Shown in pieces: positions 8,532-62,442 of a DNA stretch of 64,000 bases. Source of the DNA: Dicyema japonicum (lineage: Eukaryota; Animalia; Dicyemida); the NCBI GenBank assembly GCA_011109175.1, contig RDEW01000022.1, positions 124,001 through 188,000 on the forward strand, in the 5' to 3' direction. The number at the start of each line of letters is the position of its first letter. Position 1 is the stretch's first letter. Below the pieces are notes generated by a model, which was not told the DNA's origin, did not search any database, and was given only the letters and a program-made list of their open reading frames with translations. Both the position numbers and the translations under genes were made by a program.

Positions 8532-9330
8532 CTTCAGTTGTAGTGGGAGAAGTTGTTGTCGTCATTTCTATGAATAAACATAATATTCAAATGAATATAA
8601 TAAACGTGGAATTAAAATATTTTTCCTTTAGAAGTAATCATGGATGAAATTGAAGAAGAGATTTTACCTTTAGTGGTAGCCGTGGAAGTACTAGTATATC
8701 CTAATAAAATATATTATAATGAAGTACCCGCTATTGGTCCAATAGGTTCTTTATTCAATAGGTAGGAACTGCAATTATTTGCTTTCAAATTATTATAAAT
8801 AAAACCCTCTCCCTTAAATGATGTATTACTAGATCTTCTAAATAATTGCAATTTCATATAAAATATGTGGAGAGCATATTCAACCACTTCAAATTTAAAA
8901 TTGTAACAATAATAAAAATTTTCAAAGTCAAATCTTTCTCTTGTCCCCTCAGTGCCATCAAAACCTATTTTTTAAGTTACAAAATACCTGAATATTTAAT
9001 TCTAAATTCTTTCAGATAATTAATACTATCGCTTATTTCTATTTTAAATTGAACTTTTATATTTTTTTCCAGAAATATAATGTAGAAACTATCAGCATCA
9101 GTCACAAATTCAATGTTTGAATTGTTAAAATTAAAAACTTGACTCTACTATTATCATATTCACATACATCTCCATCTTTTGTAACCCTCAAGTTCATTAT
9201 CCGCTAAATAGTACGGTAAACTCGTATCATAAATTATCCTCCAAGTTGGAATTGGCTCACTTGATATTTTATTTACTCTATAATTGTTTTCATTTCCAAT
9301 CAAGCTAACAAACATCACAAGACCTACAAA
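8532..9330 (-). pseudogene. LAMP-like domain plus Thr-rich micro-exons (family member A; 5' part frameshifted or unresolved)
   Basis: Spliced through 23-, 24- and 27-nt GT-AG introns it reads ...FRIKYS|GFDG...FYYCYNFKFEVVEYALHIFYMKLQLFRRSSNTSFKGE|ANNCSSYLLNKEPIGPIA|GYTSTSTATTK|EMTTTTSPTTTE. Intron positions match the genes at 22 kb and 61-62 kb. Confidence 0.55.
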
Positions 9331-9499
9331 TTATTATATTTTAACGAACTCCAATCATAATAGTCATAAAGTAAGATGATAATTAGTATTCTTGATTAAT
9401 TTATTATAAAAATTATTAAAATAAAATTATTAAATTTAATTATAATTTAATAAAAATATACCAAGATGACAAAGCTGAATGGATCGCATAAGTTGTTGG

Positions 9500-12170
9500 A
9501 ACTGCCAAGTCGAGATTTGGAGTTCCTGTTATTTTTCTCAGCTGACCTCTGTGGAACGAGTCTAGTTTTTTCATATCCGCTGATGAGGTCGCCCAAGTTC
9601 CAGCGTTATATAAAAGTACGGGTTTTATGAATGAGTCGTATAGTAGGATTCTCATTTTCGTGTCGATGCCTTTTTGATTGAGCCATAGATTCTTCAGTTT
9701 ATATAACGCAGTATTGGCTAGAGTTTTCCTACGTAAAATATCTTCGCTATTTCCCATAAGTGAACCGAGTTTCTTTACTTGTCGCCACTTCTCTTCTATG
9801 ACGTTACTCATCCTTCTTATCTCTGTGAGTTCTGTTTTTCTCTGTTCACAGTAAGAAACCATTTCCCTAGTACATCTGGTGCTTTTTCTAATAGATTTTC
9901 CAGGACCTCTTTGTCTTCAGAAATTAGGTCTACATCGTCCGCGTAGATTACTTCTTTCGTCTTTCCTTGGTATGACGGTCTAAGTTCCCTCATAGCTGCT
10001 TCCAAATAAATTGTGAATAGTAGAGGAGAAAGAGAATCTCCTTGTGGAGTGCCCGTATTTGTTTCAAATTTTCTTGAATAGGTTTTTCGACTCTCACAAG
10101 GAGCTCAGTGTTAGAAAGTAGAATTCGGATCATCCTTAGACTCGATTCATCAAGAAATCCGCTCAGTACCCCCATTAATTTGTTCCTGTTAACCGTATCA
10201 AAAGCTCTTGATAGATCAATTCCCAAAATATTGGTGGCGTTACGGTATCTTTGATATGTTGCACACCTCCATCTGTGACTCCAGACCGCATCAGCTGTGG
10301 ATCTCCCTTCTCGAAAACCACTTTGACTATCTGGTAGGTATTTGTAAGCAGGTCTTTTATTCGTTCAAGCACAATGTTTGCCAAGACTTTGCGTAATGAA
10401 TTTAGTAGTATGATGGGTCGCAAATTTTTGATCGGTCCTCTGTTTTTGTTGGTTTTTGTATGGGGATTAGTAGTCCCGTACCCAGAAGTAGAGTTGAGTT
10501 AGTTGAAAACATTTCATTTAGTAGTGTAGCGATTTTTTCAAAAAGGAGGTCAGGGCCGTATTTCATAGTTCTGGGTTTATCGCATCCGGTCCGGTGCTTC
10601 TGTTATTCTTGAGTTTTCGGCAGGCCGTTTTGATTTCCTCGGCCGTGATTGGTATCTCAAGGGTTCTTGGCCTTCCATCAAACGGGTGGATTTCTATGGT
10701 TTTGATGTTGAAAAGCTTCTCAAAGTGAGCCGCGATGGCTTCAGTTTGTTCTTTGGTGTTTAGTATTAGCTTACCGTTCTCGTCTTTTATGGTTAGTCGG
10801 CTTTGGTTTGTTCGCCGCAGTAAACGGGCAGCGACGTACACCTGTGCGTTGTCTTTCACTTTGTTTACTTCTTCTATACAGGAAGCTATTTCTTCTATGA
10901 AAAGCTTCTTGTTCAGACCCTTTATTTTTCTTCTGACACGTTGTCTTTCGCCTTGAAGGGCTTTTATCGCATTAGTGTCAGAGGCATTTAATTTTCTCAT
11001 ATTTCTTTCTTTTAGACTTTTTGCAAGCTCAGGAACATCTGGATGAATAGCCTTCAGATGCATTTTACTATTCTCCCTTTTGCCAAGACATGCTTCAGCA
11101 GCTTCGTTGATGGTGTCCTTTGTTCGTTTCCAGGCATCTTCTAGTGTGATATTTACTAATACGTCCTGCAGATTAGTCTGAATGTATTGTTGATATCTCT
11201 CAGTAGTCTCCGGTTAGAAATCAGCCTTTCAGTCGCGTAGTCGCCTCTGATTTTCTCAAATTTGTGATTTTTTGCATTCTTGTATTTAATGGCATGTTTT
11301 TTCAGGGTGAAGGTCGCAATGACCATCTTGTGGTCGCTGACAGTCGTCGAGCCTTCATATGAACGTGCGTTTACTAGAAGGTGTTTGTCTTTAGCCCGGC
11401 ATATGACATAATCGATTTGGTTGTATATTGGGACCAGCTTTCCTTCTGAGTTCCTTCGCTTTACCATCCACGTAGTTTTGTGGCAGGCAGGATGCGTAAA
11501 TGCAGTATTGCATAGGAAAAGGTTGTCTGCCATACAAAAGTGACCAAGTATTGTCCCGGGTAAATTTCTTATACCACGTCCATGTTCTCCCAAGAAAACA
11601 TCATCCGGGTTATTCTTCATCCCGACTTTTGCAATCAAATCACCAGCATTGAGTATTAGTGATGACGACTCATATTCGTTGTACGTCCGTAACAGTGTTG
11701 AATAGAAGTCGTCTAGTTCTGTCGGATCTTTCGCTACTCTCCCGCAGTGTGGCGCATAAACACTTACAATTGTCAGAAAGCTCTTCGAAAGAGGTAAGTC
11801 GTTTAGCCGGATTTGTATAACACAGATCCTGTCATTCACACTCCATATACGGTGCACTGCACTTGTCAACTTTGAGTGGATGGCAAATCCAAGTCCATAA
11901 TGTTTTGAGTCGCTCGGCTGACATATAATTCGATATTCGGCAAAGTTTTCATCAAGGCTACAAGTAACTTTCGTCTCTTGTAGGCACCCAATAGATACGT
12001 CGTATCTCTCCAGGTCATCACAGAGAATCTTCCTCGACCAGGTCGTAGATAAGCCTCTAGCATTGAACGTAAGGACTTTTAGACGAGATGCATCCCTTTG
12101 TATCCATTGCCTTTTAGACATTTTTCTCAATTGTGATTCAATCAAGAAACGAGGCACGTCACCACCTCAT
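9500..12170 (-). mobile_element. RTE-clade LINE (APE endonuclease + reverse transcriptase), frameshifted
   Basis: APE motifs LKVLTFNARG, CLQETK, VSVYAPH, NQIDYVI, SDHKMV. RT motifs NRSTGPDAI, RPIILLNSLRK, DLSRAFDTVNR, YADDVD, KPVLLYNAGTW. Confidence 0.92.
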
Positions 12171-13169
12171 TAAAAAGAATTGTATCTTTTCATTATATTA
12201 ATCTTTGCTTTCATTAGTTTCGTCTCATTGACCATCGAGATGTCAACCTTGGAGGCCCCTGCGAGTAGTGCAGCTCATTATGCCTTTCCTCTAGGAATCG
12301 GCATTCCGAAATTTAGAGAAACATGAAAAGTAAGATCCCTTTGAAAAACTATTAAATAATTCTCAACTTTCTTAATAAAACTCAGTAATTAACACGACCT
12401 ATAAAAAGCGAATTTATAATTTTAATTTCTAAGATCTACTTTACAATTCTAAAATCATTTTTTTCTAAATTGAGTTAGCTTATCTTGCTGTGGAAAGCAT
12501 AGTTGACCAGACATTAGATCTACCATAAATAAGACAAGGTTCCAAGCAATGCTTTGTTTTGGGGTTGACGAGTGACACCGTCATCAGTGTTTCAACACAG
12601 CAGAACTGGATTGTTTTCTGGAACTCACACACAAAGAACAGAACACTTTCAATCAAGCCTTGGATTATTTATCATTACATTAGACATATTGTTCACACGT
12701 GGGGTCACGTAGTTCAGAAAAGTATTGAGCCATCAGATGTCACCTAGCAAACTGTTACTTGAGCAAGTGGACCCTTCTGAAAGATTAATTTCAGGCCTGG
12801 ATCCTGCATGCAATCACGCTTTCTTTGTTCAGAACTTCGGGTTTCCAATATCTCCCGAATCTGACACGTCGTCCATGTTCTCAAAGTAGGAAGACAAGGT
12901 TGTAATCAATCATAAGCTAAGTAGACATTTTGTGAAATTGAGGAACATCACCACTTCAACCCCTCGATCGATTAATCACTCTGTTAACCTTTTTGGAAAA
13001 TAAAGTCGCCGCGAAATTAGAAGTGAGATCGTAGCTGGAATAATTTATTTTCTCCCGTTCTATCCGAATGAAAGAAACCGGTGGTTAACAAGAACTCTAA
13101 AGCCAAAACGGACGCTCCCAGAGCTGGAATGATAGTCTCGCGACCTGATAACGGTTCCACAGCGTCTAA

Positions 13170-13480
13170 TAAATTTATTATTTATTTTAAAGCCCAAAGA
13201 CCACCAATAAAGTATTAATTCGCTAAATTAAGTGATTCCAGTTTCCAACATCTCTCAAACTCTCTTCGAATTCTCCGCCAGTTAACCAACAACGTTTCTA
13301 AGTGTCTTATTTCTGCAGAGGAATTCTATCGGAGTGCACTTTTTTAATGCCGTTCTGAATTCTTCCTCATGAACTACCTTCTCTCTGAATGGGTTTCCTA
13401 GCTCATTGAACATACGTAGGAAGCCCTGGCCATTTCTCACCGTTGCCTCCGAAAGAAACTGGGGATGGATATGAGTCTGA
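13170..13480 (-). mobile_element. 3' fragment of an Ingi/Vingi-like LINE
   Basis: GQGFLRMFNELGNPFR resembles GSGFLRVCEEDGNPLR of the 41-44 kb element. It ends in GAATCACTTAATTTAG... plus an AT-rich tail like the copies at 52.4 and 59.85 kb. Confidence 0.55.
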
Positions 13481-13635
13481 ATGCATATTCCTCATGATCT
13501 TCTGTCCTAGAGAGTTTATAAATTCGACCCTCGTAGAAAGAATACCGAAGCTCTGTTTAATAAATCATTCAATTAATTTCAAAAATTTAGAAAACTGTAA
13601 GAGATTAACAAAAACTAATGATGATCATATGAAAT

Positions 13636-20970: not shown

Positions 20971-21749
20971 GGAATGTAAATAACCTTCTTATGTAGAGAT
21001 TAACATCATTGTATTTAGAAACTGGTTATGTATTAATCAAAAATTCTCCTTTATAAGGAACCACCTATAGATTCTTAGTCACAATTCCTTGATAATTATT
21101 AAACGATCCACTGTCATTGGCTTCCATCAAACAAAGGAATATCATGTCTACGAAAAAATCCCCATAATGGCCTATTTAAATAGACCTATTGCTTGGAAAA
21201 GAAAAACACTTATTAATCCGACGGTAAAAATGGATATAACTTAATAAGAAGCAAAGTCAATCTCTTTCCGATATATCCGGGCTTATTAAATAAATTAGTT
21301 GTACATCACTTCAAAATAATAAGAAACATTGTGTCGTGCCAGGAGGAATCGTTACCTCACGGGTGACCTGTTTAACGTGAATTGACCTTTGCTGAAAAGT
21401 CTATCTTTCTGATTGGAACATACGACAGTCATATCCTACGTCATTAGATAGCACGTTTATCCGTGTTATTAAATAAAATAACTACATAAATTAATATCCG
21501 TGTTAATAAATAAAATAACTACATAAACCTCCAAATAAAAGAAGCATAAGGACGAATCACATATTTATTAAATTTCAAATTAAGTGACGTTATTTTAAAT
21601 CAGTTCATTCCATCTAATGATTTTACTTAATAAGCAGCCAAATATTTGGTTCTGCTTTGCTCGCTTGGTAAAATATAATGAAGCTTTCATTTCCTCTACG
21701 GATTCCCACTTTCGCATTCCAGTCCCCGGCAATAAACAATAAGTACACG

Positions 21750-21880
21750 TTATTGGTCCAATAGGTTCGGTATTCTATAGTTTAAAACTGCAATTATTTG
21801 CTTGAAAATATTATAAATTAGACTCTCAATTGTAACAATAAAAAATTTTCAAAGTCAAATCTTTCACTTAAACTACCAGT
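21750..21880 (-). pseudogene. Internally deleted fragment of a LAMP-like family gene (also copied at ~33370-33420)
   Basis: ANNCSFKL*NTEPIGPIT and DFENF...YCYN match member A (8.7-8.9 kb). It is followed by a LINE APE scrap (AGDWNAKVG). Confidence 0.45.
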
Positions 21881-22072
21881 ATTTTATGTTTCATTTCAAT
21901 TGCTATGAGATTGATAAATTTTTATTATATTAGAATTAAACTAAAAATTATTTGTTAATAAATATAAATTGTATCATCTTATTATATATATTCCATAACT
22001 GTGGTGTAAATCGACAATAATTATGGACAATATTGCTAAAGGTTTCCAAAATTAAGCAATTCAATAGGGATT

Positions 22073-23074
22073 ATGTTTTATTGTATTTTGATCGGCATTG
22101 CAAAGAATCTCATTGAAGTAATCAAATTACCAAATACACGGGTAACGACGTGGAGCATTAATAATATGGAGTATTCCATATTATTAAGCGGAAATATTAA
22201 TATAGATAATCAAAATGTACAAAAATATGATAATTTTAGGATAAAATTACGAATTTTGATAATTCAGATATTTCATTGAATATCTACCAATTAAATCAAA
22301 ACACTGACCGTATATCCATCATAATGGCAGTTAATAGGTTAAAAATTTACATTCGAATTACAAAAAGTAATAAGAATTATGAATTAGACAAAATGGATAT
22401 TCAAATTGATAGTACTTTGTAAAAATATGTTTAGGTAATGTGTATGCTAAATTGATTACTGATTATTTCAATAATGTATATCATTGCGGTGAACTTCAAA
22501 TTCAATTCGGTGAAGGTAGTATTCTTATAATGAACGAATTAACAATCCAAATATCCAACACAACGAAAATTAAAAATTTTTCTGGAAATGGTTATTTTTA
22601 TAATGAATTTTAGTTACTGAATGCAGATTTACTCAGCCTACTACAAGTAAACACTAATTAGTAATTTATGTCGTCTATTTAGTTATTTTTATTGCAATAT
22701 ATTTTATGCTATTATTTTAGTCGCTTCCACTACCACAACACCAATGGAGGCTACGACTCAAGGTACAATTTTTGTATTATGTGATCATCTAATATTTTTT
22801 GGATATATTTTTTATTTGATTATTTTAGTTCATTCGACTACCACAATACCAACAGAGTCTACGACCCAAGAAGCAATTTTTGTATTAATGGACCCAAATT
22901 TTTTTACACAAATATTTTATGTGACAATTCTATTTAAAACAACTACCACACCACTAACCGTGATTACGACTGAGGGTACAATTTTTATATTAATCAACCC
23001 ATACTATTTTGCACAAATATTTTATTTTCTAGTTAAAACAACAACCACAACACCAACGGAGACTACGATTGAGG
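22073..23074 (+). CDS. LAMP-like domain followed by Thr-rich 42-nt repeat exons (family member C); 3' end cut by a CRE fragment
   Basis: Introns 22217-22239, 22412-22434 and 22591-22613 (all 23 nt, GT-AG) and 22647-22720 give an open frame ending ...NNVYHCGELQIQFGEGSILIMNELTIQISNTTKIKNFSGN|VTECRFTQPTT|IASTTTTPMEATTQ.... No transmembrane exon or stop is found downstream. Confidence 0.7.
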
Positions 23075-23124
23075 GTACAATATTAATAATTATTAAAAAA
23101 TTAGACATTCTCACCTTTTTCTAA

Positions 23125-23330
23125 GGGAAATTGTCTGATTTGGGATGGGACGTGCAGAGACACCATTTCCACACGTCGCTGATAGATGCCAGACTAAGGC
23201 TGGTCATCATCACATGCTTCTTTTCATAGGTATCGCAATTTGCTACTCCCTTCATCGATGCTAGTCAAGTGATCTACCTTTACAGTGGTATTCTTAGTGT
23301 CCATTGGTCATGTCTTGAAAAAAACACATC
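23125..23330 (+). mobile_element. CRE-clade RLE fragment
   Basis: GNCLIWDGTCRDTIS matches GRNLIWDATCVDTYS of the 38.7-40.5 kb element. Confidence 0.55.
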
Positions 23331-26300
23331 TACAAAAATATGTGTGAATTCAATAACGCACACTAATTCGTGCTGTAGGATACACGTGCGTTATTTGTTT
23401 ATANATAAATAAATATCAGTGTGTATGAGCCTAAAATAAGCACTCTTTAGGATTGTCTTAAGAAACAAATTATTATGATTTCGATTCATTTGTTTTACCT
23501 TCTCTGAAATAAGCACATCCAAATTTGTTTAACCGTTAATGATTAGCATAGTTGACCAGACATTAGATCTACCATAGATAAGGCAATAAAATTTTGTGTT
23601 CTGAAAATTTCTTGACGTGTATAATGCAAGTTAACATTTTATGTGTTCTTAACCTCAAATGCTAATTTCCAATTTCACTATATCTTGTATTTGAGCTAAT
23701 CTCGCTTGCAATCCAGAGAATAGCCACAAAGTTAGGATGGAGTCAGTATGACCCTCAAATTGATTGTTACTTTAGTCCTTCAAAGCTTTAATACAAGTTC
23801 TTAGACAGACATGGAATGGGAAAACTCCTTATGTGGTAAAAATCTTTCTAATTTAAAGAGAAACTGTATATTTTTTAACTTAGAGTTTTCAAATTTTCGT
23901 GTGGTCTCTTCACTTTTCGACACATACGACATTTTATTAAAAATGTATTACAAAAAACTATTTTTATTAAATATACAATCTAACGTGGACCTACAATAAA
24001 AACCTACCAATATAAACGTACTTTTTAATTAAATTTTACAAATTATTTTTAAATTTTAAATAACTACAATTTCTTTTTTGTTTATGACAATATTAATTTT
24101 TGCAATTAATTTTAGTTTTAATAATAATTATTTTGGAATAAACTGAGCTCACCTAAGATTTTCAAAAAACATGCTCATCTGTAACGTAACGAGTATTTTT
24201 TCGATCAGCTAAGACCTTGTTTAACTTTCTTTTCATAGATCTACAGTAAAGCAAGAGCGTCACCAAGATCCATTTGTTCTCCCTAACATGAATCAATAAA
24301 AATTACTGATGGTGGTTTCTCAGAATTTCTTCCTCACATAATTTCTACAAGTAGCCTCATCGTCTCCACAGTCCTTTCTTTCCCAAATGTACGTGAATGC
24401 CGACCATTCGTCTTCTATGTTCTCAATGTACCAGTCATCTGGGAATCGACATCCATTCTGTCCAATAATTTCTGTCCAGCTTCAATAACCATGAATATAA
24501 CTTAATAGACTCATTCATTTAATCAGTCCGTCGTTTCAATGTCTGAATACTCGTTATTGTGAAGACAAATTCAGATTATCAGATCCAGTAGAATACTAGC
24601 TTACAAGAACAATCGAGACTAGAATTGGAAGGAAATCACTGAAGACAGTTTGAGCATGGAGAACTCATCGATGTCCCAGAGATATACCCAAATTGGTCCA
24701 AACAGTTTTTTAGTGCTTTTTATTGAACTTTGGTGTAGTCCACCAATACAAGTCCAAAAAGTAACGGTTGTTTCAACAGTATTCACCTTTGTTCGGTTCT
24801 TTCTAAGTATTCGATTAGGCCAAGTACAGATTTAAGAAATTAATCACACTTATCCACATCTGAATATTAGTCTCACACTTGGATGAAATCGAAATTCGAG
24901 TAAGATTCCACTCTGATATTTGAAACACTTCTGGAAATAATTAGCTAAAAAACCTAAGTGAACTCACTGGTTGTACTAATCAGGTCTTGCGTATCTTCCT
25001 AACATTTCATTACTACAGATGACGGAAGAGGTGAAAGCAAGTTACGATAAACAGACGGGTCTTCAGATTCCCTATTTTCCAGTGGCTTCATTAGCCGGTT
25101 CTTGTGCTATCGTTGATTTCTGACAATAAACACATTGCTGTCTCACAGCGACCGGCTAATTTTTTTAAATCTTAAAAGCAAACTCATTTAAACCTCAGAA
25201 TCGACTTTCTCAATATAGAAAGACACGTGGTAAATCTTTTTAGGTCAAGTTTATATTCCCTGAATCTTTTCGAGAATTCTGTCGAATGAATTGATAAAAG
25301 TCACAAGAATTTAAATTTTAACTTCATTTTACATCATAAACAACAGATATTAGTTCGTGACTCTAGAATGTTCAAATTGATGACTTACTCGTTCCATTAA
25401 AATAAAATAAACTCGAAAGAGTTAAATTGAGGCTGGACAGACTTATAACCATTTGCTGAGTAATTTCTTAGTACTTTCAGTGTACTAGTCAAGTTAGTTG
25501 ATGAAGAAAGACGTTACATAAAGACCATGTGCTCAAATTATTAATTAAATAAAATTTTAAATATGATTATTTTTTATAATTTAATTAATTTTTTTTATTT
25601 TAACCTAAAATGATTAAAACGTCTCTGACTTATGGAAGATCGGAAATCATCCTATTTTGAAATATACAACAATACATCGAGCCATGCAATTCTTATGTCT
25701 GTAGCATTTAGGGCTCATTCATTTCTTGGACAAGTGTTTTGTTGTGGAAAATTCAGTTTCCAATGCCTCTGGAATCCCTAATACGTTAGAACCGAGGAAC
25801 ATGTCGTTGTGACTACGAAGATCCATTTATTCGGCCAATACGTGCTTGTGTGGTGTGAGGAAGGAGCATTGGACAGTTGAGTTCACAAACAATTAAAAAG
25901 TTTGAGTCAATGTCCGAAGGCAACTCCAGCTTATGCTTTTCCCGATCTTCCACTGCCAAGAAAATAAGGACTCATGCATCAAGAGAAGACATATTCCACA
26001 ATAATATATGATTTTGACCATCAACACATGTCAAACAGATTATTGCCCGAAGGTGAAACACCTCTACGACATAGAGTAACTCTTGGAATTTAGTAGACCC
26101 TTTTAACGGTTAATATTAAGCGTTGACCATTAATAAATGAGAGAGTAGTACAAGTCCATAAAAGGTAATATTTATATTAGTTAAAAGCACTCAGATGTTT
26201 CTAATAAGCACACGAATAATAAGGTAATAGTTTGTTGTACTCCCAACCATCATTTCTACAAGTTACATTCGTCTAACTTTCCTTTTTGCGGAAATTTGTA

Positions 26301-28698: not shown

Positions 28699-28727
28699 AA
28701 CTACTAGCTAGATTAACTCAATTAATT

Positions 28728-33100: not shown

Positions 33101-33579
33101 CCTACAAAGATGGCCAATATCAGTGTTATTAAATAAAATAACTACATAAACCTCCAAATAATAAGAAGCATAAGGACGAATCATATATTTATTAAATTTC
33201 AAATCAAGTGACGTTATTTTAAATCAGTGCATTCCATCTAATGATTTTACTTGATAAGCAGCCAAATATTTGGTACTGTTTTGCTCGCTTGGTAAAATAT
33301 AATGAAGCTTTCATTTCTTCTACGGATTCCCACTTTCGCATTCCAGTCCCCGGCAAAAAACCATAAGTACACGTTATTGGTCCAAAAGGTTCGGTATTCA
33401 ATAGTTTAAAACTGCAAAAAATTTTTATTATATTAGAATTAAAATTAAAAATTATTTGTTAATAAATATAAATTGTATCATCTTATATATATATATATTC
33501 CATAACTGTGGTGTAAATCGACAATAATAATGTACAAAATTGCTAAAGGTTTACAAAATTAAACAATTCAATAGGGATT

Positions 33580-33964
33580 ATGTTTTATTGTGTTTTTGTC
33601 GGCTTTGCAAAGAATCTCATTGAAGTAATCAAATTATCAAATACACGGGTAACGACGTGGAGCATTAATAATATTAAGTATTCCATATTATTAAGTGGAA
33701 ATATTAATATAGATAATCAAAATGTACAAATATATAATAATTTTAGGATAAAATTACGAATTTTGATAATTCAGATATTTCATTGAATATCAACCAATTA
33801 AATCAAAACACTGACCGTTTATCCATCCTAATGGCAGTTAATAGGTTAAAAATTTACATTCGAATTACAAAAAGTAACATGAATTATGAATTAGACAAAA
33901 TGGATATTCAAATTGATAGTACTTTGTAAAAATATGTTTATGTAATGTGTATGCTAAATTGATT
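33580..33964 (+). pseudogene. 5' part of LAMP-like gene C, duplicated and truncated
   Basis: Near copy of 22073-22460. The second intron acceptor is mutated (TTAG to TTAT) and the copy is cut off by a DHPS fragment. Confidence 0.7.
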
Positions 33965-33967
33965 AGA

Positions 33968-34105
33968 CTAACAAGGGGATTTGACTTACATATATTGTAG
34001 AACGATTTCCCGGTTATTTGTCCCGCTTTGACTGACGGTTATATTGGAAATATGTTGTTTCTTCACTTTTTTGGACGTCCTGGACTAAAGCTTGACATTA
34101 TTGAA
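33968..34105 (+). pseudogene. DHPS: Deoxyhypusine synthase fragment (copy 3, inverted)
   Basis: [28 protein letters not shown], on the opposite strand to copies 1 and 2. Confidence 0.8.
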
Positions 34106-35114
34106 AGAAAAAGGTGAGAATGGCTAATTGTTGTTTGCCGTTAAGAATATGAATTAACATCGAGTAAGTCAAATACTTTTTTTAAACATAAGCTTTAATA
34201 ATAATTACACTAAAATAAATGTTACAGTACTTGACCTCTTTTTTCTTTTTTTAAATTTATTAAGCTAATTAAAGACAAAAATTAACAGTTAGAAATTACT
34301 GGATTATCTCACAATCGAGAACGCATTTCACCTGAAACTTTGAAAAGAAATGTGCTAATCAGAGAGCTCCTTTCTCTTCTATAATTTTTAATTAGACAGT
34401 TCCTTAGTGATTACGAATTTTTTTCAGATTTAGAAAACTTGCGGTGTTCCCAAGCAAGATAAGCTAACTCAATTTAGAAAACAATAATTTTAGAATTTTA
34501 AAGTAGTTCGCATTTTTATATGTCGTGTTAATTACTGAGTATTACTAAGAAAGTTTGAGAGTTATTTAATAATTTTTCAAAGGGATTTTCTTTTCAAGTT
34601 TCTATAAATATCGGAATGAGTGGATACAATTATGATATGGAATATCAGAAGCGACCACATTCTACACGGATTGGTTATTAGCATGAGGTCAAATATTATG
34701 GAAAATGTTTTCATGAAGTTCAATATATCTCGTGTGGATTAGGTGCACTATCGATGCTTCGTATTTCTTTCACGACTCCAATAAATATCTATGTTTATTA
34801 TAGAAGTTTCTGTCGTAAGACAAAAGAATTTAAATTTTGAGTATTTTATTGTGAGTTCTCGTTGTGTATATATTAATAAAATGATGATTTTTAAAGATCC
34901 AGTCATCATCAGAGTATAATTTAATATTTAATAAATAATGGTTGTAAATGAAATCCGAAAATTAATTCGCCAACTAAAACCCCATGTTAATTTTAATTAA
35001 ATTAGTATCATATGTCCCGTTAAACGAGCATTCCCAATGATGTTGCAAATCGATGATTTTCAGACGATGTCATGCGTGCAAGATTATTCATCGGAAATTG
35101 TGTAGCGGTCAAGT

Positions 35115-35775
35115 CTTCAAATATAAATAATTAATATGATTTTAGGAATAGGTTAAACAATATCAATATTGTACCCTGAGTCGTACTCTCCGTTGATGTT
35201 GTGGTAGTTGTTTTAACTAGAATAGTAACATAATATATATATGCAAAAAATATTAGTTGATTAAAAAAAATAAAAATAAAGTTGATTACATAATACAAAA
35301 ATTGTACTTTGAGTGGTAGCTTCCGTTGGTGTTGTGGTAGTGGAAGCGACTAAAATAATAGCATAAAATATATTGTAATAAAAATAACTAAATAAGCGTC
35401 ATAAATTACTAATTAGTGTTTACTTGTAGTAGGCTGAGTAAATCTGCATTCAGTAACTAAAATTCATAATAAAAATAACCATCTCCAGAAAAATTTTTAA
35501 TTTTCGTTGTGTTGGATATTTGGATTGTTAATTCGTTCATTATAAGAATACTACCTTCACCGAATTGAATTTGAAGTTCACCGCAATAATATACATTATT
35601 GAAATAATCAGTAATCAATTTAGCATACACATTACCTAAACATATTTTTTACAAAGTACTATCAATTTGAATATCCATTTTGTCTAATTCATAATTCTTA
35701 TTACTTTTTGTAACTCGAATGTAAATTTTTAACCTATTAACTGCCATTATGATGGATATACGGTCAGTGTTTTGA
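35115..35775 (-). CDS. Inverted paralog of LAMP-like/mucin gene C (member D); 5' end lost at N 35776
   Basis: Reverse complement of ~22293-23075. Exons 35424-35456 (33 nt), 35308-35349 and 35175-35216 (42 nt each) have intact GT-AG sites. Degenerate second-domain-like sequence continues below 35115. Confidence 0.7.
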
Positions 35776-35776
35776 N

Positions 35777-37214
35777 AACAGTCATTTTACCTTCAATCGT
35801 CGACGGATTTGTAGAAGCTAGGGAAATTAACAGTCATTATACCTTCAATCGTCGACGGATTTGTAGAAGCTAGGGAAATGAACAGTCATTTTACCTTCAA
35901 TCGTCGACGGATTTGTAGAAGCTAGGGAAATGAACAGTCATTTTACCTTCAATCGTCGACGGATTTGTAGAAGCTAGGGAAATGAACAGTCATTTTACCT
36001 TCAATCGTCGACGGATTTGTAGAAGCTAGGGAAATGAACAGTCATTTTACCTTCAATCGTCGACGGATTTGTAGAAGCTAGGGAAATTAACAGTCATTAT
36101 ACCTGATGTTGTTGACTGAGTAGTAGAAGCTAGAGAAATGAAAAGTCATTATACCATCAGTAGATGAAGTGATAAAAGCTGACGTTAATAAAAAGTCATT
36201 TTACCTTCAATCGTCGACGGATTTGTAGAAGCTAGGGAAATGAACAGTCATTATACCTGATGTTGTTGACTGAGTAGTAGAAGCTAGGAAAATGAACAGT
36301 CATTATACATGATGTTGTTGACTGAGTAGTAGAAGCTAGGGAAATGAAAAGTAATTATACGTGATGTTGTTGACTGAGTAGTAGAAGCTAGGAAAATGAA
36401 CAGTCATTTTACCTGATGTTGTCGACTGAATAGTGGAATCTAGGGAAATGAAAAGTCATTATACCATCAGTAGATGAAGTGATAAAAGCTGACGTTAATA
36501 AAAAGTCATTTTACCTGCAATCGTCGACGGTTTAGTAGAAGCTAGGGAAATGAACAGTTTTTATACCTGCTGTCGTCGACTGAGTAGTAGTATTATCTTG
36601 GAAAATGACTAATCATCATACATTCAGGCAATGGATAAGTAAATTCTAAAGTTAATGAAAAATCATTATACTTCTTAGTGTCGTCTGAAGATATGAAGCT
36701 ATGGAATTTAACAGTTTTTTATACCTTCTTTCGTCGACGGAGTAGTAGAAGCTTTGAATATGACTAGTCATTATACCTTTAGTCAATGAACTGATAGAGG
36801 CTATCGTTAATGAACAGTCACTATACCTTCAGCCAATGGAGTGGTAGTAGCTGACGTTAATGAAAAGTCATAATACCTGTAGTTGTCGACGGAGTAGTAG
36901 AAGCTAGGATAATGACTAGTCATTATACTCTTAGTCAATGAACTGGTATAGGCTATCGTTAATGAACAGTCATTATACCTTCAATCAATGGAGTGGTAGC
37001 AGCTGACGTTAATGAAAAGTCATAATACCTGTTGTTGTCGACGGAGTAGTAGAAGCTAGGGATGGGACTAGTCATCATACCTGCTGTTGTCGACTGAGTA
37101 GTAGAATCTAGGGAAGTGACTAGTCATCATACCTGTTGTCGTCGACGGAGTAGTAGAATCTAGAGAATTGACTAGTCATTATACCTTCAATAAATGAAGT
37201 AGTATCTTCATTTT
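35777..37214. repeat. Minisatellite with 50-55-bp units (dominant 52 bp)
   Basis: The unit AACAGTCATTTTACCTTCAATCGTCGACGGATTTGTAGAAGCTAGGGAAATG repeats almost perfectly from 35777 to ~36100 and diverges toward 37214. Confidence 0.97.
35791..37214 (-). CDS. Mucin-like Ser/Thr/Pro-rich segment encoded by 28 symmetric micro-exons (partial gene)
   Basis: Every unit parses as GT...AG intron (25-26 nt) plus exon of 24, 27 or 30 nt, all phase 1-1. The spliced 741 nt are stop-free: ENEDTTSFIE-DSTTPSTTT-DSTTQSTTA-ASTTPSTTT...-(ASTNPSTIE)x6. Start and stop codons were not identified. Confidence 0.82.
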
Positions 37215-38599
37215 CTATTAATTAAAATTTACATTAATACCTTTTCCTTAACTTAATCCAATCTCTATTAATCAAAATTTACAATTTACTGGAAAATATT
37301 TCGAAGAATATCAAAAGACTGACTAATATCATTCAACATTTCCGTCTGTGTTCGATTATAAATATTCATCAAAGAATTTGACCTTATTTATTGTGAGTCG
37401 AATGAATTCCATACACATAAAGGGATATTAGCTTATATCTCGATTAATTTCTTCTCTTACTAATCTCACTTCACGTAATGGAAACGTTCTTTTTTATCTC
37501 TGATGATATCAATAAAAATTCTTTGTCTAAAAATAAATAACAATAAAAACTAACTTCACAATCATATTTGTTCACAAAAGAGACTCCTGACAAACACCAC
37601 AGATTTCAACATTACCCTATAAGACGTCCGAATTATACTTGGAAAAACTCGTTACTTTTATAGAGGATATCCCTGGGGACTTGGAATTAAATTTTTATTT
37701 TATTACATCAAATATATATGAACGAAGTTTAATTAACTTTGGAATTTCATATATACACAGATTGACTTTCCCTATTTTTTTGTTAGGTTTGTAATGTACA
37801 TCAACTGGATAACTCTCTGGGTACTCTTTGAATTATTTTAACTCAAGCCAATTTTTAATTTGAAACTTTTTTTATATGATATTTTGACTATTAACCACAT
37901 TTTTGAAATATCTTAATAATGTCAAGGATCATATATATTATGAATGTGCTATCTATGGATTTGATCTTTTATAGACATATGAATTCGTGATCCGCTTTCA
38001 ATTGGCACAAAAAATAAGTAACTAAAACCAATTAATTGTTTTTTAAACTCAAACGATTGAATAATCAATCAGTATAATTTATCTTATTTGTTATTCCCAA
38101 TTGCTCATCAGTGACAGCTCACAGTCGCCTTCGATTACTTGGATCCACTTATCCCTATGGTGACGGCATTGAACGCTAATTTGGGACTATGAATGCCCCA
38201 GGCTGACTGGTGGAACTTAATAAAACCTATTATGGGTAATTCTGGATTTATTCAAAACTATGAGAAACCTCGAAAGTATTCAGTAGGGCGAATTTTGTCA
38301 TTATCTCAAAAATTCATATGTTCTTTAAATTTGTTTGAAACTTGCACAAAAAATTTAATAACATTCACAAGTTCGTGTTAGTTAACAATTTTTTTAAAAA
38401 AATATTGCTTCAGATTTTTTTCCATCTACTAACTCGATAGATCATGATTGCATCCAACAAGACAACTCAAATGTACTTCTTTATAAATCAATAGTTAAGT
38501 CAAAAAATCAAAATTAGATTTTCGGTCAATAATGTAAAATAATTTATTGATTTTCTTATTGATTTTTTTGAGTTTTTGAATTAGATAATAACTTGTCAT

Positions 38600-40545
38600 C
38601 GAGATACGTTCTCGGAACCAACCAGTCTCTCGCGGATCCTTGGTCACAACTTGAATCATGGAGCCGATCTTACGAACCAACTCATCTGCTTGGGGCCAAG
38701 GATTCCTGACGTTTCCACTGCGAATGGAACAAAAAGATACTCCTCCGAAATTCTCTGGTACTCTTTCGTTCCTCCTGCTTTGAAGCATGTCCTGGGTCTG
38801 AAGCAGAAGTAACCAAATTAGACGGGGAATAAGTATCAACACACGTCGCGTCCCAGATCAGGTTTCGTCCGTTAGCGAATGGAAAAGTCGTCATCCCATC
38901 AGGGTGTTTTCTATCGTTTCGGGAAAGACCAGCAGGTTCTAACAGGCAATTGTGTCCAGCAGAGGCAAGGGAATTCTTTAATGTCATGTTAAGACAGGAG
39001 TGCCTGGGGAAACGACCCGCACTCATCTTGCATGACAAGGGATGATAACCAAAAGGATCGATCCAACGTCCACAGCGGCATTTTCTTTCGGCACACAATT
39101 TAAGACCAAGACGAAGCGAGGTAGCTATCCTCACAGCTTCATCATCCAACAGGTTTCAATTTCGGCAGATGGATAAGCGTTCATCCAGGCCCCCGTCGAG
39201 TGACAACTAGCTGTTTTGAGGCAGGCAAGCCTTCTTACATCTTCCGTCTTTTCAAGGGACTCTTTCTTCTTTTCGAAGACACAAAACAAATAGGACTTTT
39301 GCTTATCACAATTGGCCGGAGCATTCAGGTACAAATTCATCCATTCATCCCAGGCTCCCGACGGCGTCAGCGGTACGTTTAGTCTGGAAGTAGAGTGAAG
39401 GACCGTATCCACTAAACGCCTTGACGAGCCGAACGAAGAAATAGGCGCCCAAAGCAACGTCCGAAGGAAGAGAAAGACCCAAACCACCGCAGGCTACAGG
39501 GAGTGAGGCCTGTAACCATCCGAAATCATCAAAACGAACATTAAGAATGGACCCCATCGTCGACCGATATCCATATCAATTAACGATAGAAGGTCTTTTT
39601 CGGCGTAGCATGGGGATCCCCGTAGAATAAAAAGGAGTCTTGGGAGAATGAGACAATTCTTCAGCATAAAAAAGGCGACATGACGGTCCAAAAAACTCAT
39701 CCTGTCGGCATACTGACGTAAATTAGTCCTCTTGCCTTCCAATAACTCCCTCACCCGGTTTACCAAAATCCCACACCCAAGGAAGTCGAGAGAATCAATA
39801 TGAGTCTCCCTAACCCCTGGGATGATTTCGCAGAGTTTTCTATGAAAAAGGTAGAATGAATCGGAACTCAAATTCAGATTAATTGCTTCGCACTTTTCAT
39901 TGTTAAATTCCAGACCGATTTTTCCACACAAACTTCTGATCGACGCAACTTTGGAGAGAATATCATCGGGACTTCCACCGAGAATACAATCGTCCAGATA
40001 CCAGACGTTCAGTGGAGTGCAACGGTCCTGGGCAATATGGTCGATAGACAAGGAAAATAGAAGAGGACCGAGTGGGTCCCCCTGTTGAACTCCGGATCCG
40101 GACGAAATAATTCCACTGCCAAAAGCAAGAGGGATGGATCCGAATACGCGAGATATACAAAGGGATAAATCTGAGGAATCCTCCTTCTACAAGTATCAAG
40201 GACGGTGTCCCTTCTGACTGAATTGAAGCATTCCGGAGGTCCAATTTGAATAAAACTCTGTCCTCAACATTAAATTCAGCTGATTGTGACGCAAATTCTC
40301 TCACTGCGTGGATCCCAGCTTCACAGCCGCCATTGATTCCGACACCAAGCTGCGAAGGACAAAATTCGGCTGAAATTCGGGAGATAACAAAACGACAAGC
40401 CATTTTTGCGGATAAACGTCGAAATACGTTTCCAATTGCAATGGGGCAAATACCACCATCTTTCTCTCCAAGGCCCGTTAGATTCGCCGAAAAGAGGAGA
40501 TTCCGACCAAAATCGGAAACGTCATGGCCATTCAGATGCCTTAAA
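38600..40545 (-). mobile_element. CRE-clade non-LTR retrotransposon (RT + Zn-knuckle + restriction-like endonuclease), 5'-truncated and frameshifted
   Basis: PIAIGNVFRRLSAKMAC, QLGVGINGGCEAGIHAVR, QQGDPLGPLLFSL, WYLDD, GGLGL, CRCG...HPLSC...RH..LN, HPDG...LIWDATCVDT. Confidence 0.88.
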
Positions 40546-56910: not shown

Positions 56911-57129
56911 AATAAGTTTTTGAAATTTGACAATTCTTAATGTACCCTTTCTCTCCTACCTCGTCTACAAAATTTAAAGAATTAATTATTTCGGGGTACA
57001 TATCATTAAATCCATTGCTTTAGTCAATTCTGTTGTTTCTATTTCAATTTTTTATTAAAGAATAAATTCGATGTTTAAAAATCCTCTTCTACAAAGTTTC
57101 ACCGTATATAGTATGGTTATGATATATTT

Positions 57130-58430: not shown

Positions 58431-58472
58431 TAGATCAGGTCGGTGATCAGTCTTCTTAAATTTGAAGTTTAC

Positions 58473-58677
58473 TAAAACATGCTAAATTTTACCAATGCAT
58501 TATCATCCAAAGGGCAAACTTAATTTATGTTTTTCTTAATTTCTTTAAGAACGAGATGATGTGGTCCATTTATACTAAACCATGCTAAATTTTACCAATG
58601 CGTTATCATCCAAAGGGCAAACTTAATTTATGTTTTTCTTAATTTCTTTAAGAACGAGATGATGTGGTCCATTTATA
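58473..58677. repeat. 103-bp tandem duplication
   Basis: CATGCTAAATTTTACCAATG occurs at 58478 and 58581. Confidence 0.85.
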
Positions 58678-59008
58678 AAATAATAATTTCCGGAAGAAAA
58701 AAAGACCAAACTAAACGATACTAGTGAATCACTCGTCACTGCGTGCTCACTCGTCACTGCGTGATAGATCAAAGGAAGACGACAGGGCAAGGGAGAGAGC
58801 CCTATTGAAATTCATTAGGATCACATAAATTTTGAAAATCCATACAGAGTAGGGACAAAATGAACAGGTCTCTAGTTAAAAAAATATATCTGGCTGTGAG
58901 CCAACAGAAATGACACGTCTCAGCCGTCTCAGAAAATCAATGCGTAAATATTTTAAGTAATAAAGACGATTAACCCATTTAACCAAAAAGAAATCATAAT
59001 TAGCTTAA

Positions 59009-59305
59009 CTAAAGGAATGGTTCGGTAAAGAGTGATTCATTACGGGATTTCATTTTGATGTAAATATTAGCAATTACGCCAGTAAGTATTATAAATAGTA
59101 CCAATGACAACACTAGTCCGAAGATTCCAATTATTTGATGTTTCGTCAGTTTTTTTATGGATTCATTTTCAGACGATATTAGTTCTTCAAAACTTATTTT
59201 ATCTAAAATTCAAACAAGTTTACTCACCATCTGCAATATTATGATGTTTAATCGTGGTTTTGTTTTTAATTTCAGTAGATGATTGTGTTTCAAAGCATCC
59301 TTCAT
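59009..59305 (-). pseudogene. 3' two exons (stalk, transmembrane helix, tail) of a LAMP-like paralog; 5' part lost
   Basis: DEGCFETQSSTE...|DKISFEELISSE...KLTKHQIIGIFGLVLSLVLFIILTGVIANIYIKMK...* with a 25-nt intron at 59203-59227. The last exon is 194 nt, as in 61141-61334. Upstream splice sites are mutated. Confidence 0.75.
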
Positions 59306-59809
59306 ATAAAATTCAGTCAGATTTATTATCCTCATTTTCCAATATGGAAATCACCTCGCGTCCCCATTTTTAGAAATGTCGGATACAAGGAAGTATTGGA
59401 TACACCAATTTCTGTGTTCGAATCTTATCTGGCCAAAATTGGTGGACCTTAGATATGTGTGCCTTGTGAAGGAATAAGAGTTAGTTATTGTTTTTCAAAT
59501 GTTCTTAATAGAAATGATAATATCTGAATCAAGATACTAGGTATCTTGATGTCCAAATATTTTGCCTACGTACTAAAGAAATGAATTCATATTCTCACTA
59601 AAAAAAGTGGTCTGGGATCACAGGGTACATTATTTTTCTCGTTTGCCCAAGTGATTCATTTTATTTAACCATAATAATTAGTCAATAATGGTTCCACTGA
59701 TTAATTAGAATTTTTTATTTTAAAAAATTATTCATTTAAGGATTTGTTAAGTTAATTCAATATTTGGGAGACTACGCAGAGAGGATCCGGAAATTTATGG
59801 AGGCTGGTA

Positions 59810-61000
59810 TTATTATTATTATTAACCCAAGAATACCAATAGTTAATTTATTACTAAATTAAGTGATCTCGAAGGATTCAATCAGAATTCTCATTTTCTC
59901 CTCGTGCGCCTGAGATCCAACACAACTCTGTAGGTGGAGTGTTTTCAGGAATAGGTATTGGAAAGGGGTGATGTATTCCCTTCTCACAAGACACGTCGTG
60001 AATGTGTATTGTTGAGAGTTGCTTGCTTGCACAGGGTAGCAAATTAGTTTCCATTTTGTAGGATAAAGTCTTCAAGTGATGAGGGTATTAGTTTTTCTGG
60101 TTTCCAGAGATCACTAATAGTAGTGGTTTTTAAGGCCTGAATGTCCCTGTTTCTTTGTTTGTTCGTCCAGGACAGATTAATTCTCCATGACGTACAGGCA
60201 TGGCTGACAGATGGCTCAATGAATTGTTTGTACAACAATTTCAAAGCAGGGAAAGGGGTTTTAATGCCACCGAAAATAGTTTTGATTATCCCTAGCTTTC
60301 TTGAGCAGCTTCCAGAGACGGCGTCGACGTGAGATGATAAGGACATGTGTGTGTCGAAGGTAATCCCGAAGATATTCAGTTTCTTCGTGAAAGGTATTTT
60401 CGTCTGGTTGATAAATATTTCCACTGTCATTTGTTCAAGTCGTTTTCTGAGGTAAATAAAGACAAAGAAGATTTTTCAGTAGATATATCTAGCCGGTTAT
60501 AATTTAGCCAAATTTAATCTTGTGAAGGTATTCTTGTAGTCTTTCTAATGCCTTTGGGATATCTTGATCGCGGGATCCGATTAATAAGTAATCACCATAT
60601 GATAAGATGAAATCGTCTTTATTATAAGAGTTGTGGTAAATCGAACATGTATAAGTTAAATAAGGCGGGTGATAAAGGGGAACCTTGTGGACACCATTGG
60701 GTAATAATATTGAAATTGGTCCAATTCATGTATATCCGGGCCCTTCTTCCATTTATGAAGTTAGTAAACCAATGTTTTTTTTGGTGTAATCGGGGAGAAC
60801 AAACAACTTCCGGGTTAGGATTTTTCTTAAGACAGAGTCGAAGGCCTTTTATAAATCAATCGACAAACGACTGTTTTAATTTGTGTTAAAGCCTTCAATG
60901 ATAAATTAATTGACAAAAGTTAGGTTGGTAGACTGCTGCATATTATCAAAGCGACTCCAATCCACTTGAGGAGGCTTTTTTTGAAAGCATCTTAGCATTT
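59810..61000 (-). mobile_element. 5'-truncated Vingi-like LINE
   Basis: PQGSPLSPALFNLYM, IPFTKKLNIFGITFDTHMSLSSHV, LYKQFIEPSVSHACTSW, and a (TAA)n tail. Confidence 0.8.
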
Positions 61001-61140
61001 TTTCGAAAACAGTAGGGATTTTTGGTATACTTTCGTTATATTTGACAAAATAAAAAATTTTGTAAAATTTTAGAATATAGACTGTAATTCAAATAATTAT
61101 AAAAATTTGAATAAATTGAAGAAGATTTGACAAATTAATA

Positions 61141-62442
61141 TTAGTTAGTTACAAAGGTTAATGGAATGCTTTCTTGTATTTCAGTATGTGATTTCGGTTT
61201 GATATAAATAACGAAAATGATACATGTGACTATTACTGCGACAACTCCACACACGATTCCAACTTTTTGAAGTTTCGTCAATTTTTTTAAGGCTTTACTT
61301 TCAGACAAAAGTAGTTTTTCAGTACTTATTTTATCTAAAATTTAGTCGGTTTACAGTATTACGATGGTTAATAGTGGTTTTTTTGTCTTTAATTTCAGTC
61401 GATATTGGTTCTTCAAAGCATCCTTCATCTAAAATTCAGTCGGATTTATTAACCATCTCCAATAAATTCAAAAATTAAATCATTGCGGAAAAATTGTAAT
61501 TTGAGAGATGAAATTTTGATAGTCACATTATTATAGTTTTGTGAGATGATTCCACAATGATAAAATCTTCCCATTTTAATTTGTTTAAATTGTTTTTCAA
61601 GTGAAACACATTTAATTCTTCTATACCCAACACAAACAGAAAAATTATGAATATGATATTTATTCTTATATTGTTTATTAGCCATAAATGTTATAGTAGT
61701 ATGATCACTAGTCAATATATATTTATATTCACTATAATAATTTGTTAAAATATTATAATCATAATCACTGAAATGCTCATCTGTTATCTAAGAATCAATG
61801 TTCATGTGTACAATTGTGTTATTGTCAATATATGATATTTTGATAATTCCACTTATTACTCCTTGGATTCTATTTTTGTTAAATAAAAACCAAATCGGCG
61901 TATTTGGGTCATTATTTGGGTTACAGTCATTAGCTAAATAAATCTTTATTAGAACCTTTTCCAGTAAAATAATCAAAATAATCATCATTGTGATATTGCA
62001 ACTTGTTCGAATAAATTGTAACAGATAAATAATTCGTAAAAATAATATGAGTAAAACCGCATCTGTAGTATTCCCCATATTTAGTTTGTGGTATCTTTGT
62101 GATATTTGTGTAATGTTTACCACCTTAATTATAACAATAAACGTACCATAAACAATTTCTGTTATTAAGTCAATAGTATAAAACTCATTGTAAAAGTGAG
62201 GAATTAGTTTAAAATTTATATTATCACGAGATAACCTATAGTCTCCACGAGTTTTCCAGTGATCTATATGTTGATCGTTTTTTAACTTCCATAAACTATT
62301 TTCCTAAAGTTAATGAAATATATACTATAGATGGATTCTCATAAATTATATATGAATCAATTAATAAATATTTCTCATAGCATATTATTTTGACGATTTT
62401 GCTTAACAGAATAAATATGATAAAATGAATAGTTCTGTTCAT
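61141..62442 (-). CDS. 385-aa type-I membrane glycoprotein with signal peptide, two LAMP-like domains, TM helix and short tail
   Basis: Six GT-AG introns (62304-62325, 62124-62146, 61934-61955, 61788-61811, 61429-61453, 61335-61362; 22-28 nt) give 1158 nt from ATG to TAA without stops. Signal MNRTIHFIIFILLSKIVKIIC; domains YYRCG...NKLQ...FTGK|ANDC and FYHCG...NNVTIKISSLKLQFF...FIGD|DEGC; TM VGIVCGVVAVIVTCIIFVIYI. The gene model is solid; the LAMP call is motif-based. Confidence 0.82.

Follow-up and report, generated by a model that had tools for sequence, protein, structure and literature searches.

A large and mostly decaying gene family of Dicyema japonicum predicted to encode membrane glycoproteins with probable, strongly diverged LAMP-type domains

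Introduction

In other animals, lysosome-associated membrane proteins (LAMPs) carry out housekeeping at the lysosomal membrane and are encoded by few genes (one to five). In this work we describe a gene family that came to attention as seven related loci in a 64-kb stretch (the window, by which the whole stretch is meant throughout) of the genome assembly of Dicyema japonicum (67.5 Mb, 377 contigs, approximately 35% GC). Our reading, which we hold with better than even confidence on the strength of sequence comparisons and structural models, is that these loci represent a very large, mostly decaying family of type I membrane glycoproteins with diverged LAMP-type beta-prism domains.

LAMP-1 and LAMP-2 offer the nearest comparison for the two-domain form of the family, represented in the window by one intact gene at 61 kb. 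The predicted protein has the type I topology of LAMP-1/2, with one transmembrane helix and a short cytosolic tail, as well as two homologous luminal domains (97.2%, E 4.6e-11) joined by a Pro-rich hinge, which here is NPNNDPNTP as compared with approximately 30 amino acids (aa) in LAMP-1/2. It also shares two C-terminal cysteines some 37 residues apart, the second of which immediately precedes the membrane-proximal segment, and its predicted fold ranks nearest to the solved LAMP domains. Unlike LAMP-1/2, however, it gives no match above the Pfam cut-off, its first disulfide is missing or moved, it has only about 4-5 N-glycosylation sequons, a spacer of approximately 45 aa precedes the transmembrane helix, and the 20-aa tail carries E-x-I-P-L-x in place of GYxxΦ. 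Moreover, the family counts approximately 150 loci, against few LAMP genes in other animals.

The second form of the family combines a single LAMP-type domain with a Ser/Thr/Pro-rich mucin-like region, as do CD68/macrosialin and DC-LAMP (LAMP-3). In those proteins the LAMP domain adjoins the membrane and is preceded by an N-terminal mucin region (Wilke et al. 2012), whereas in the stalk type described here the domain would be distal and the stalk membrane-proximal, with a tail-less hydrophobic end instead of a transmembrane helix and tail. Another related fold, the luminal domain of Ac45/ATP6AP1 (PF05827), belongs to a single-copy V-ATPase subunit, and PF05827 has no match in the D. japonicum genome. 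The build of the stalks recalls the micro-exon genes (MEGs) of schistosomes, also parasites, in which runs of very short symmetric exons encode exported proteins. In both cases, because the short exons are symmetric, the reading frame survives the gain, loss or skipping of an entire exon. Unlike in MEGs, the 33-42-nucleotide (nt) phase 1-1 micro-exons found here build only a Thr-rich stalk on a folded domain, and there is no sequence relationship between the two.

Dicyema japonicum is a parasite of the octopus kidney, and dicyemids are nourished solely by endocytosis, their peripheral cells taking up nutrients from the host urine. Its published assembly comprises 67.5 Mb in 377 scaffolds, with an N50 of 1,000.2 kb and a mean intron length of 38 bp (PMC6736024), and the genome is reported to hold 5,012 genes. 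Before evidence was mapped for the published annotation, any sequence present in more than 30 copies had been masked, so that a family of this size may have been hidden from it. LAMP is not mentioned in the accessible parts of the genome paper, its supplements and the stage-expression paper, the family is missing from the portion of the published gene descriptions that was available, and a literature search returned no paper combining dicyemids with LAMP.

Results and Discussion

Seven loci and one intact two-domain gene

All seven loci proposed in a first-pass annotation of the window exist, at 8.7, 21.8, 22, 33.5, 35, 59 and 61 kb, as established by sequence reading, tblastn and repeat comparison; a motif scan together with tblastn found no members in the window beyond these seven. 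They form two subfamilies, a two-domain transmembrane type (61 and 59 kb) and a one-domain type with a mucin-like stalk (8.7, 21.8, 22, 33.5 and 35 kb). Only the 61-kb locus is intact. The other six of the seven, including all five of the stalk type, are broken, and three are pieces of one recent duplication, with 95-96% identity. The parts of the 61-kb gene are as follows.

61141..62442, minus strand: intact two-domain gene of 7 exons, all open, read directly from the sequence
62442-62326, 62303-62147, 62123-61956, 61933-61812, 61787-61454, 61428-61363 and 61334-61141, minus strand: exons 1 to 7
62147..62303, minus strand: exon 2, the hypervariable middle of domain 1, as judged from pairwise identity and the non-synonymous substitution rate (dN)
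61454..61787, minus strand: exon 5, 111 codons encoding most of domain 2, with a hypervariable first half and a conserved second half (…YHCG…LKLQFF…FIGD)
62443..62560, minus strand: conserved 118-nt upstream segment common to paralogs, with the similarity boundary at the same position in many copies

The introns of this gene measure 22, 23, 22, 24, 25 and 28 nt and are all GT..AG, and its coding sequence of 1158 nt, or 385 codons, matches the protein length given earlier. In the order of the protein, a hydrophobic leader is followed by domain 1, the short Pro-rich linker, domain 2, the spacer, a transmembrane stretch and the tail, which ends in ESIPLTFVTN; the type I topology was judged by eye from the leader, the single hydrophobic stretch (in exon 7) and the length of the tail. 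Domain 1 ends …YYRCG…KLQ…FTGK/ANDC and domain 2 ends …YHCG…KLQ…FIGD/DEGC, the slash marking a phase-1 intron here and below. Paralogs align with the gene across 62560-60932. Mean pairwise identity is 0.81 in the 118-nt upstream segment and 0.59 farther upstream, and the segment is probably the core promoter together with the 5' untranslated region (UTR).

The more complete loci share the motif YxC…LQ…FxGx/xxxC, which is found, besides the two instances above, as FSGN/VTEC in the 22-kb gene and as FKGE/ANNC in the 8.7-kb gene. The claim of a shared motif with identical intron position and phase therefore stands for the 61-kb, 22-kb and 8.7-kb genes, each with a phase-1 intron before xxxC. A second phase-1 intron, approximately 18-22 residues before YxC, is common to domain 1 and the stalk type.

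Relationship to LAMP

A model and a profile search both point to LAMP. The AlphaFold model of exon 5 of the 61-kb gene (predicted local distance difference test, pLDDT, 79; predicted template modelling score, pTM, 0.71) retrieved LAMP-3 first in Foldseek (probability 0.97), with LAMP-2 at 0.92 and LAMP-1 at 0.80, and a Foldseek-independent search placed LAMP-3, LAMP-2, Ac45, LAMP-1, Ac45 and LAMP-1 at ranks 1, 2, 3, 6, 9 and 10 of 48,161 chains. The Pfam Lamp family PF01299, whose gathering cut-off is 27.2 bits, was the most recurrent Pfam match (4 of 28 members, best E 1.8e-4), and all six of its best candidates genome-wide were members of the family in one register, none of them above the cut-off. 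Domain searches and folds were made exon by exon, which lowers the scores. Residues 1-105 of the exon-5 model align to residues 260-369 of DC-LAMP, while Pfam puts exon residue 13 on model position 49; the hidden Markov model and the structural alignment agree in register, with exon residue 1 at approximately domain position 37-39, which accords with the first strands being encoded by the preceding exon.

The cysteines were then compared with those of LAMPs. YxC…xxxC is kept in both domains and both subfamilies, with a spacing of 37 residues in domain 2 of the 61-kb gene, and these two cysteines would pair as the second conserved LAMP disulfide. With regard to the first disulfide, domain 2 of the 61-kb type has a Cys at the second position and a non-canonical Cys 9 residues later, a sister subfamily (first found via Pfam) and the stalk subfamily have neither, and a Cys pair of the first-disulfide type, with a spacing of approximately 37 residues, was found only at locus L060, elsewhere in the genome.

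Of all the relatives in the genome, L060 (G000:C1:1087596-1090886, minus strand) looks closest to a canonical LAMP, as judged by eye and from alignments. Its features are two Cys pairs, the first Cys aligning beside Cys274 of DC-LAMP, a LAMP-like transmembrane segment and a C-terminus …GTYIKI of the form GxYxxΦ; it goes unrecognised by Pfam. An N lies within the locus, whose 3' end is repeated in tandem, perhaps through an artefact of assembly.

Several observations weigh against our reading. The best paralog exon reaches 20 bits, against the cut-off of 27.2 (E 6.5e-4 and 1.8e-4), and the ten exon translations from the window gave no Pfam Lamp match at E<=10, only noise. Oxysterol_BP, an unrelated family, reaches similar E-values in the same subfamily. 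No LAMP was found by two family profiles among PDB sequences, nor by a family profile among 1.84 billion proteins. The exon-5 model represents a single exon and lacks the initial strands of the domain as well as the final one, and the canonical first disulfide (Cys274-Cys311 in DC-LAMP) is absent from the window copies. The AlphaFold model of L060 is poor (pLDDT 65) and ranks LAMPs only at 12-36, behind bacterial barrels. As regards the genes themselves, a ratio of non-synonymous to synonymous substitution rates (dN/dS) near 1 and approximately 60% broken copies would also fit widespread loss of function, and the glycosylation, localisation and adaptor binding proposed here are predictions from the sequence.

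The LAMP-like domain of the first-pass annotation is nonetheless the best reading, as LAMP folds top the structure searches and Pfam Lamp is the most recurrent sub-threshold match, but it passes no curated threshold; likewise, the fold comparison came out with LAMP-fold chains on top for exon 5 and not for L060. Overall, we regard descent of the family from LAMP, at a distance below every curated threshold, as likely from sequence and model taken together.

One dispersed family in two forms

Searches with tblastn found no similarity between the 61-kb type and the stalk type. When compared by hhalign with an alignment of 28 domain-2 exons, however, the stalk exons scored 95.8% (E 8.3e-9), the domain-1 exons gave the value already quoted for the two luminal domains, and L060 scored 96.2% (E 2.3e-9). 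Profile comparison therefore joins the two types into one family, though BLAST does not.

Genome-wide, 103 exon matches were obtained with the domain-2 exon of the 61-kb type, 88 with its counterpart from the sister type and 10 with the stalk exon, half of the last (5/10) lying on the contig of the window. At least 184 exon-level matches in the 67.5-Mb assembly correspond to approximately 150-160 loci once overlaps and split hits are removed, and about 60 of these have an open, near-full-length domain-2 exon. As the loci are dispersed over many contigs, the family is not the local one that had been described. Its lineage specificity was borne out, since the profile of 28 domain-2 exons found no relative outside the family among 1.84 billion proteins. 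The sole match of that profile, a bacterial BIG2-repeat protein matched via its repeats, was discarded as spurious, and the look-alikes in the ESM Atlas were set aside as well, having a low recognition score and consisting only of Rep proteins from AT-rich Bacillota.

The 59-kb locus retains the 3' end of a further member of the two-domain type.

59012..59312, minus strand: 3' relic of a two-domain paralog, reduced to the xxxC and transmembrane/tail exons, with the tail …SLFTEPFL

By tblastn, this relic matches exon 6 (E 6e-7) and exon 7 (E 2e-10) of the 61-kb gene; exons 1-5 have no tblastn match there, and no domain exons lie upstream. Two more copies were seen past the end of the window, at contig positions 198608-198928 and 209591-209926 (10 and 21 kb beyond), one of them 88% identical to the 61-kb gene and containing stops, the other belonging to the sister subfamily. 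A further locus, L029 (G000:C317:277049-280306), has a domain-2 exon with an in-frame internal duplication of approximately 33 codons.

Stalk-type loci and their micro-exons

The stalk type is present in the window as the following copies and fragments.

22073..23076, plus strand: stalk-type gene, 3'-truncated, with the start codon at 22073 (sequence reading)
22073-22216, 22240-22411, 22435-22590 and 22614-22646, plus strand: three domain exons and the xxxC exon (33 nt, VTEC) of the 22-kb gene
22721-22762, 22829-22870 (donor mutated) and two more near 22937-22976 and 23035-23076, plus strand: Thr-rich 42-nt exons of the 22-kb gene
21745..21880, minus strand: decayed fragment of an 8.7-kb-like copy (direct sequence comparison)
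33163..33995, plus strand: direct duplicate, at 95-96%, of 21539-22400 (repeat search; tblastn identity 86-93%)
35020..35774, minus strand: inverted duplicate, at 96%, of the 3' half of the 22-kb gene (repeat search; sequence)
35774-35660, 35635-35480 and 35456-35424, minus strand: exon 2 remnant, exon 3 and xxxC exon of the 35-kb copy
35349-35308, 35216-35175 and 35114-35020, minus strand: two 42-nt Thr exons and the terminal exon of the 35-kb copy
8386..9367, minus strand: stalk-type copy with a putative start at 9367, domain exons and FKGE/ANNC (open reading frames; comparison with paralog L043)
8701-8669 (approximately; 33 nt), 8567-8532 (approximately; 36 nt) and 8445-8386, minus strand: two Thr exons and the terminal exon of the 8.7-kb copy

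The Thr-rich stalk exons of the 22-, 35- and 8.7-kb genes measure 33, 36 and 42 nt and are all phase 1-1, just as symmetric exons of 33-42 nt had been described. In all three genes they lie after the domain, so that the order of CD68 and DC-LAMP, with an N-terminal mucin region, is not the one found here.

Each of these copies is damaged in its own way. The 22-kb gene runs into transposon-like sequence from approximately 23.12 kb, and tblastn found no homolog of the anchor exon for it near 23 kb. The 21.8-kb fragment has lost most of the YxC…FxGx exon and kept the ANNC…EPIGPI exon, and the 33-kb copy consists of a 21.8-type fragment, followed by exons 1-2 of a 22-kb-like gene and the beginning of its exon 3, where the copy breaks off. 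In the 35-kb copy, the terminal exon matches paralogs L039 and L040 (E 4e-13) and has a 1-nt deletion relative to them that shortens the hydrophobic end; a single N stands at 35776, at the upper junction of this copy. The 8.7-kb copy appears frameshifted within its first coding region, near 9165-9200, and its terminal exon, which matches L043 (E 2.5e-5), carries a premature stop before the hydrophobic tail; it is probably a pseudogene, otherwise near-complete.

Some further features adjoin these loci. A 157-codon frame on the plus strand (22651-23121) reads without a stop across several stalk introns, each a multiple of three nucleotides long, and as one of these introns lacks a GT donor, intron sequence may be read as coding there. 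Beside the 35-kb copy, 35791-37214 is an array with a 52-nt period, in which the minus strand has 27-nt Ser/Thr/Pro-rich exons (…STNPSTIEG) alternating with 25-nt introns; since only the single N separates array and copy, the junction may be an assembly join. In addition, retrotransposon-like open frames flank or interrupt family copies at 9443-9916 (minus strand), 23125-23400 (plus strand) and 38498-39155 (minus strand), and include a reverse-transcriptase-like piece and a recurring …NLIWDATC.DTYSPSNL… segment.

Tails, anchors and predicted location

Neither tail in the window (ESIPLTFVTN, SLFTEPFL) contains GYxxΦ, as had been noticed before; paralogs end in EYIPIF, ESIPML, ENIPLVF or GSIPLI, and a C-terminus such as GTYIKI occurs only in L060. 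What the tails do share, across 50 tail exons, is a C-terminal E-x-I-P-L/M-Φ motif (ESIPL(T/S/I)FVTN, ENIPLVF, ESIPML, ENIPMI, GSIPLI, YSIPLI), with Y-x-P-Φ in the sister subfamily (EYIPIF, EYLPVF, VYVPIL), and ESIPLT of the window copy is a weakened form of it. We take these motifs to fit the [DE]xxx[LM][LIV] (dileucine-like) and YxxΦ patterns of adaptor-binding sorting signals. As the tails carry a motif resembling an endocytic or lysosomal signal throughout the family, a purely cell-surface location is unproven, and the argument that the proteins sit at the surface for want of a lysosomal signal does not hold.

A surface location keeps its appeal for the stalk subfamily only, not for the two-domain type. 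Intact stalk-type paralogs elsewhere in the genome end in a hydrophobic stretch of 15-16 residues with small residues before it and no cytosolic residues after it (L039 and L040 end …TTSSANHRFATLLGVIALTVLMILI; L043 ends …SSETRPFEVSFLMLAWMLVVILI), whereas the window copies end before or inside this stretch. Such an end looks like a glycosylphosphatidylinositol (GPI)-anchor signal. From these features, the two-domain type has the appearance of an endocytic protein and the stalk type that of a surface coat.

The last exons of the two-domain type also showed an exchange-like pattern. Paralogs L009-L036 and the 61-kb gene (61239) have either of two last exons, with the tail …ESIPLxFVTN or …SLFTEPFL, and in every one the similarity breaks at the identical point, a pattern suggesting that copies have exchanged 3' ends and become mosaic.

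Evolution of the copies

Median pairwise dN/dS in exon 5 is 1.05 for the 61-kb type and 1.27 for the sister type. Variation is concentrated in exon 2 (mean pairwise identity 0.80, dN 0.237) and in the first half of exon 5 (identity 0.78, dN 0.271, pooled dN/dS 1.21), as compared with the second half of exon 5 (identity 0.88, pooled dN/dS 0.95). These two coding segments vary more between copies than introns (identity 0.84-0.92) and UTRs (3' UTR, 0.87), for which the pooled non-coding distance is 0.134, and the family is fast-evolving in just the sense that had been proposed. The signal-peptide exon, on the other hand, has a dN/dS of 0.50. If the structural register is followed, the back sheet of the domain would fall in the variable half of exon 5. 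The synonymous rate (dS) is also raised in the variable segments, so that the pattern is accounted for equally well by exchange between old lineages and by positive selection.

On terminal branches, exon 5 has acquired 6 stops where 21.5 were expected, in a sample biased to good copies; this deficit argues that coding capacity is still maintained in many copies, or was until recently. All seven exons are open in approximately 10-13 of the 30 best loci, and these sampled copies, set beside the six broken loci of the window, agree with the birth-and-death evolution suggested earlier. The duplicated unit is the gene with 118 nt upstream and approximately 120-210 nt downstream, with no terminal repeats or mobile-element ends, and a mobile-element carrier was rejected on that account.

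Alternative explanations

That the loci encode lineage-specific orphan beta-sandwich membrane proteins, in which the layout and the fold ranking reflect convergence or generic beta architecture and not LAMP ancestry, is unlikely in our view. Six LAMP-fold proteins among the ten best of 48,161 chains, the Foldseek probability of 0.97 for LAMP-3, the agreement of Pfam and structural registers, the Cys-Cys spacing of 37 residues with, as in LAMPs, a last Cys immediately outside the domain, and the GxYxxΦ C-terminus of L060 all speak against it, even though it would account for sequence evidence that stays below threshold throughout, for profiles that find no LAMP in PDB sequences or 1.84 billion proteins, and for an L060 model that does not put LAMPs first. 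Least probable of the explanations considered here is a dead repeat family, in which one gene was passively amplified, for instance on a mobile element, and drifted neutrally, the open frames being recent survivors. A dN/dS of approximately 1 in most exons, the many fragments and copies with stops, the six broken loci out of seven in the window, and the transposon sequence that adjoins several copies could all be read in this way. It fits less well with the deficit of terminal-branch stops (6 against 21.5), with splice sites and tiny introns that have been kept, with the constrained signal-peptide exon (dN/dS 0.50), and with rates that differ between exons, unlike uniform drift; moreover, a unit of gene and short flanks has no terminal repeats or shared mobile-element ends.

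A variant surface coat directed against the host, made of antigenic or ligand-binding cassettes under diversifying selection and gene conversion, with few copies expressed at once, also appears improbable. In its favour, dN reaches 0.24-0.27 in exon 2 and in the first half of exon 5, above the non-coding distance of 0.134, but dS is raised in the same segments, and old or exchanged lineages explain the pattern equally. Similarly, mosaic 3' ends with two alternative tail exons and a common breakpoint, a large reservoir of pseudogenes, and the mucin-like stalk and GPI-like end of the stalk subfamily would suit a coat, while the two-domain tails resemble endocytic signals. Cephalopods, in addition, are not known to possess the antibody-type immunity that would drive classical antigenic variation.

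Proposed explanation and significance

Returning to the reading of a large, decaying family with LAMP-type domains, the two-domain form would have kept the layout of LAMP-1/2, with GYxxΦ replaced by E-x-I-P-L/M-Φ, or by Y-x-P-Φ in the sister subfamily. This tail motif may bind clathrin adaptors, in which case the proteins would shuttle from the apical membrane to endo-lysosomes and back. The stalk form would be derived, with one domain raised on an O-glycosylatable stalk of symmetric phase-1 Thr-rich micro-exons, and the tail-less, GPI-like end of its intact paralogs would complete the layout of a surface coat. Growth of the family may have proceeded by dispersed duplication, at the DNA level, of a 1.6-kb gene unit, most copies of which decay, and in each domain the segment expected to form the back sheet would vary far more than the conserved framework. 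Such proteins may serve as a glycoprotein coat or as a ligand-binding repertoire at the endocytic surface and in the endo-lysosomal system of the peripheral cells.

With approximately 150 loci in a genome of 5,012 genes, the family would be among the largest of the parasite, and a large, variable family of endocytic or surface glycoproteins would bear on how dicyemids feed and persist on host tissue. A LAMP-type domain on a mucin stalk built from micro-exons, with a tail-less anchor, would moreover be an architecture undescribed for LAMPs. As a bolder possibility, to which we give a low probability, the family could be a diversified repertoire of LAMP-fold recognition or coat proteins at the parasite-host interface, in which hypervariable back-sheet cassettes are exchanged among the approximately 150 copies and pseudogenes, stalk length is tuned by micro-exons, and members differ by cell or stage. 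If that were true, it would add a new scaffold, other than the immunoglobulin one, on which an animal builds a variable surface repertoire.

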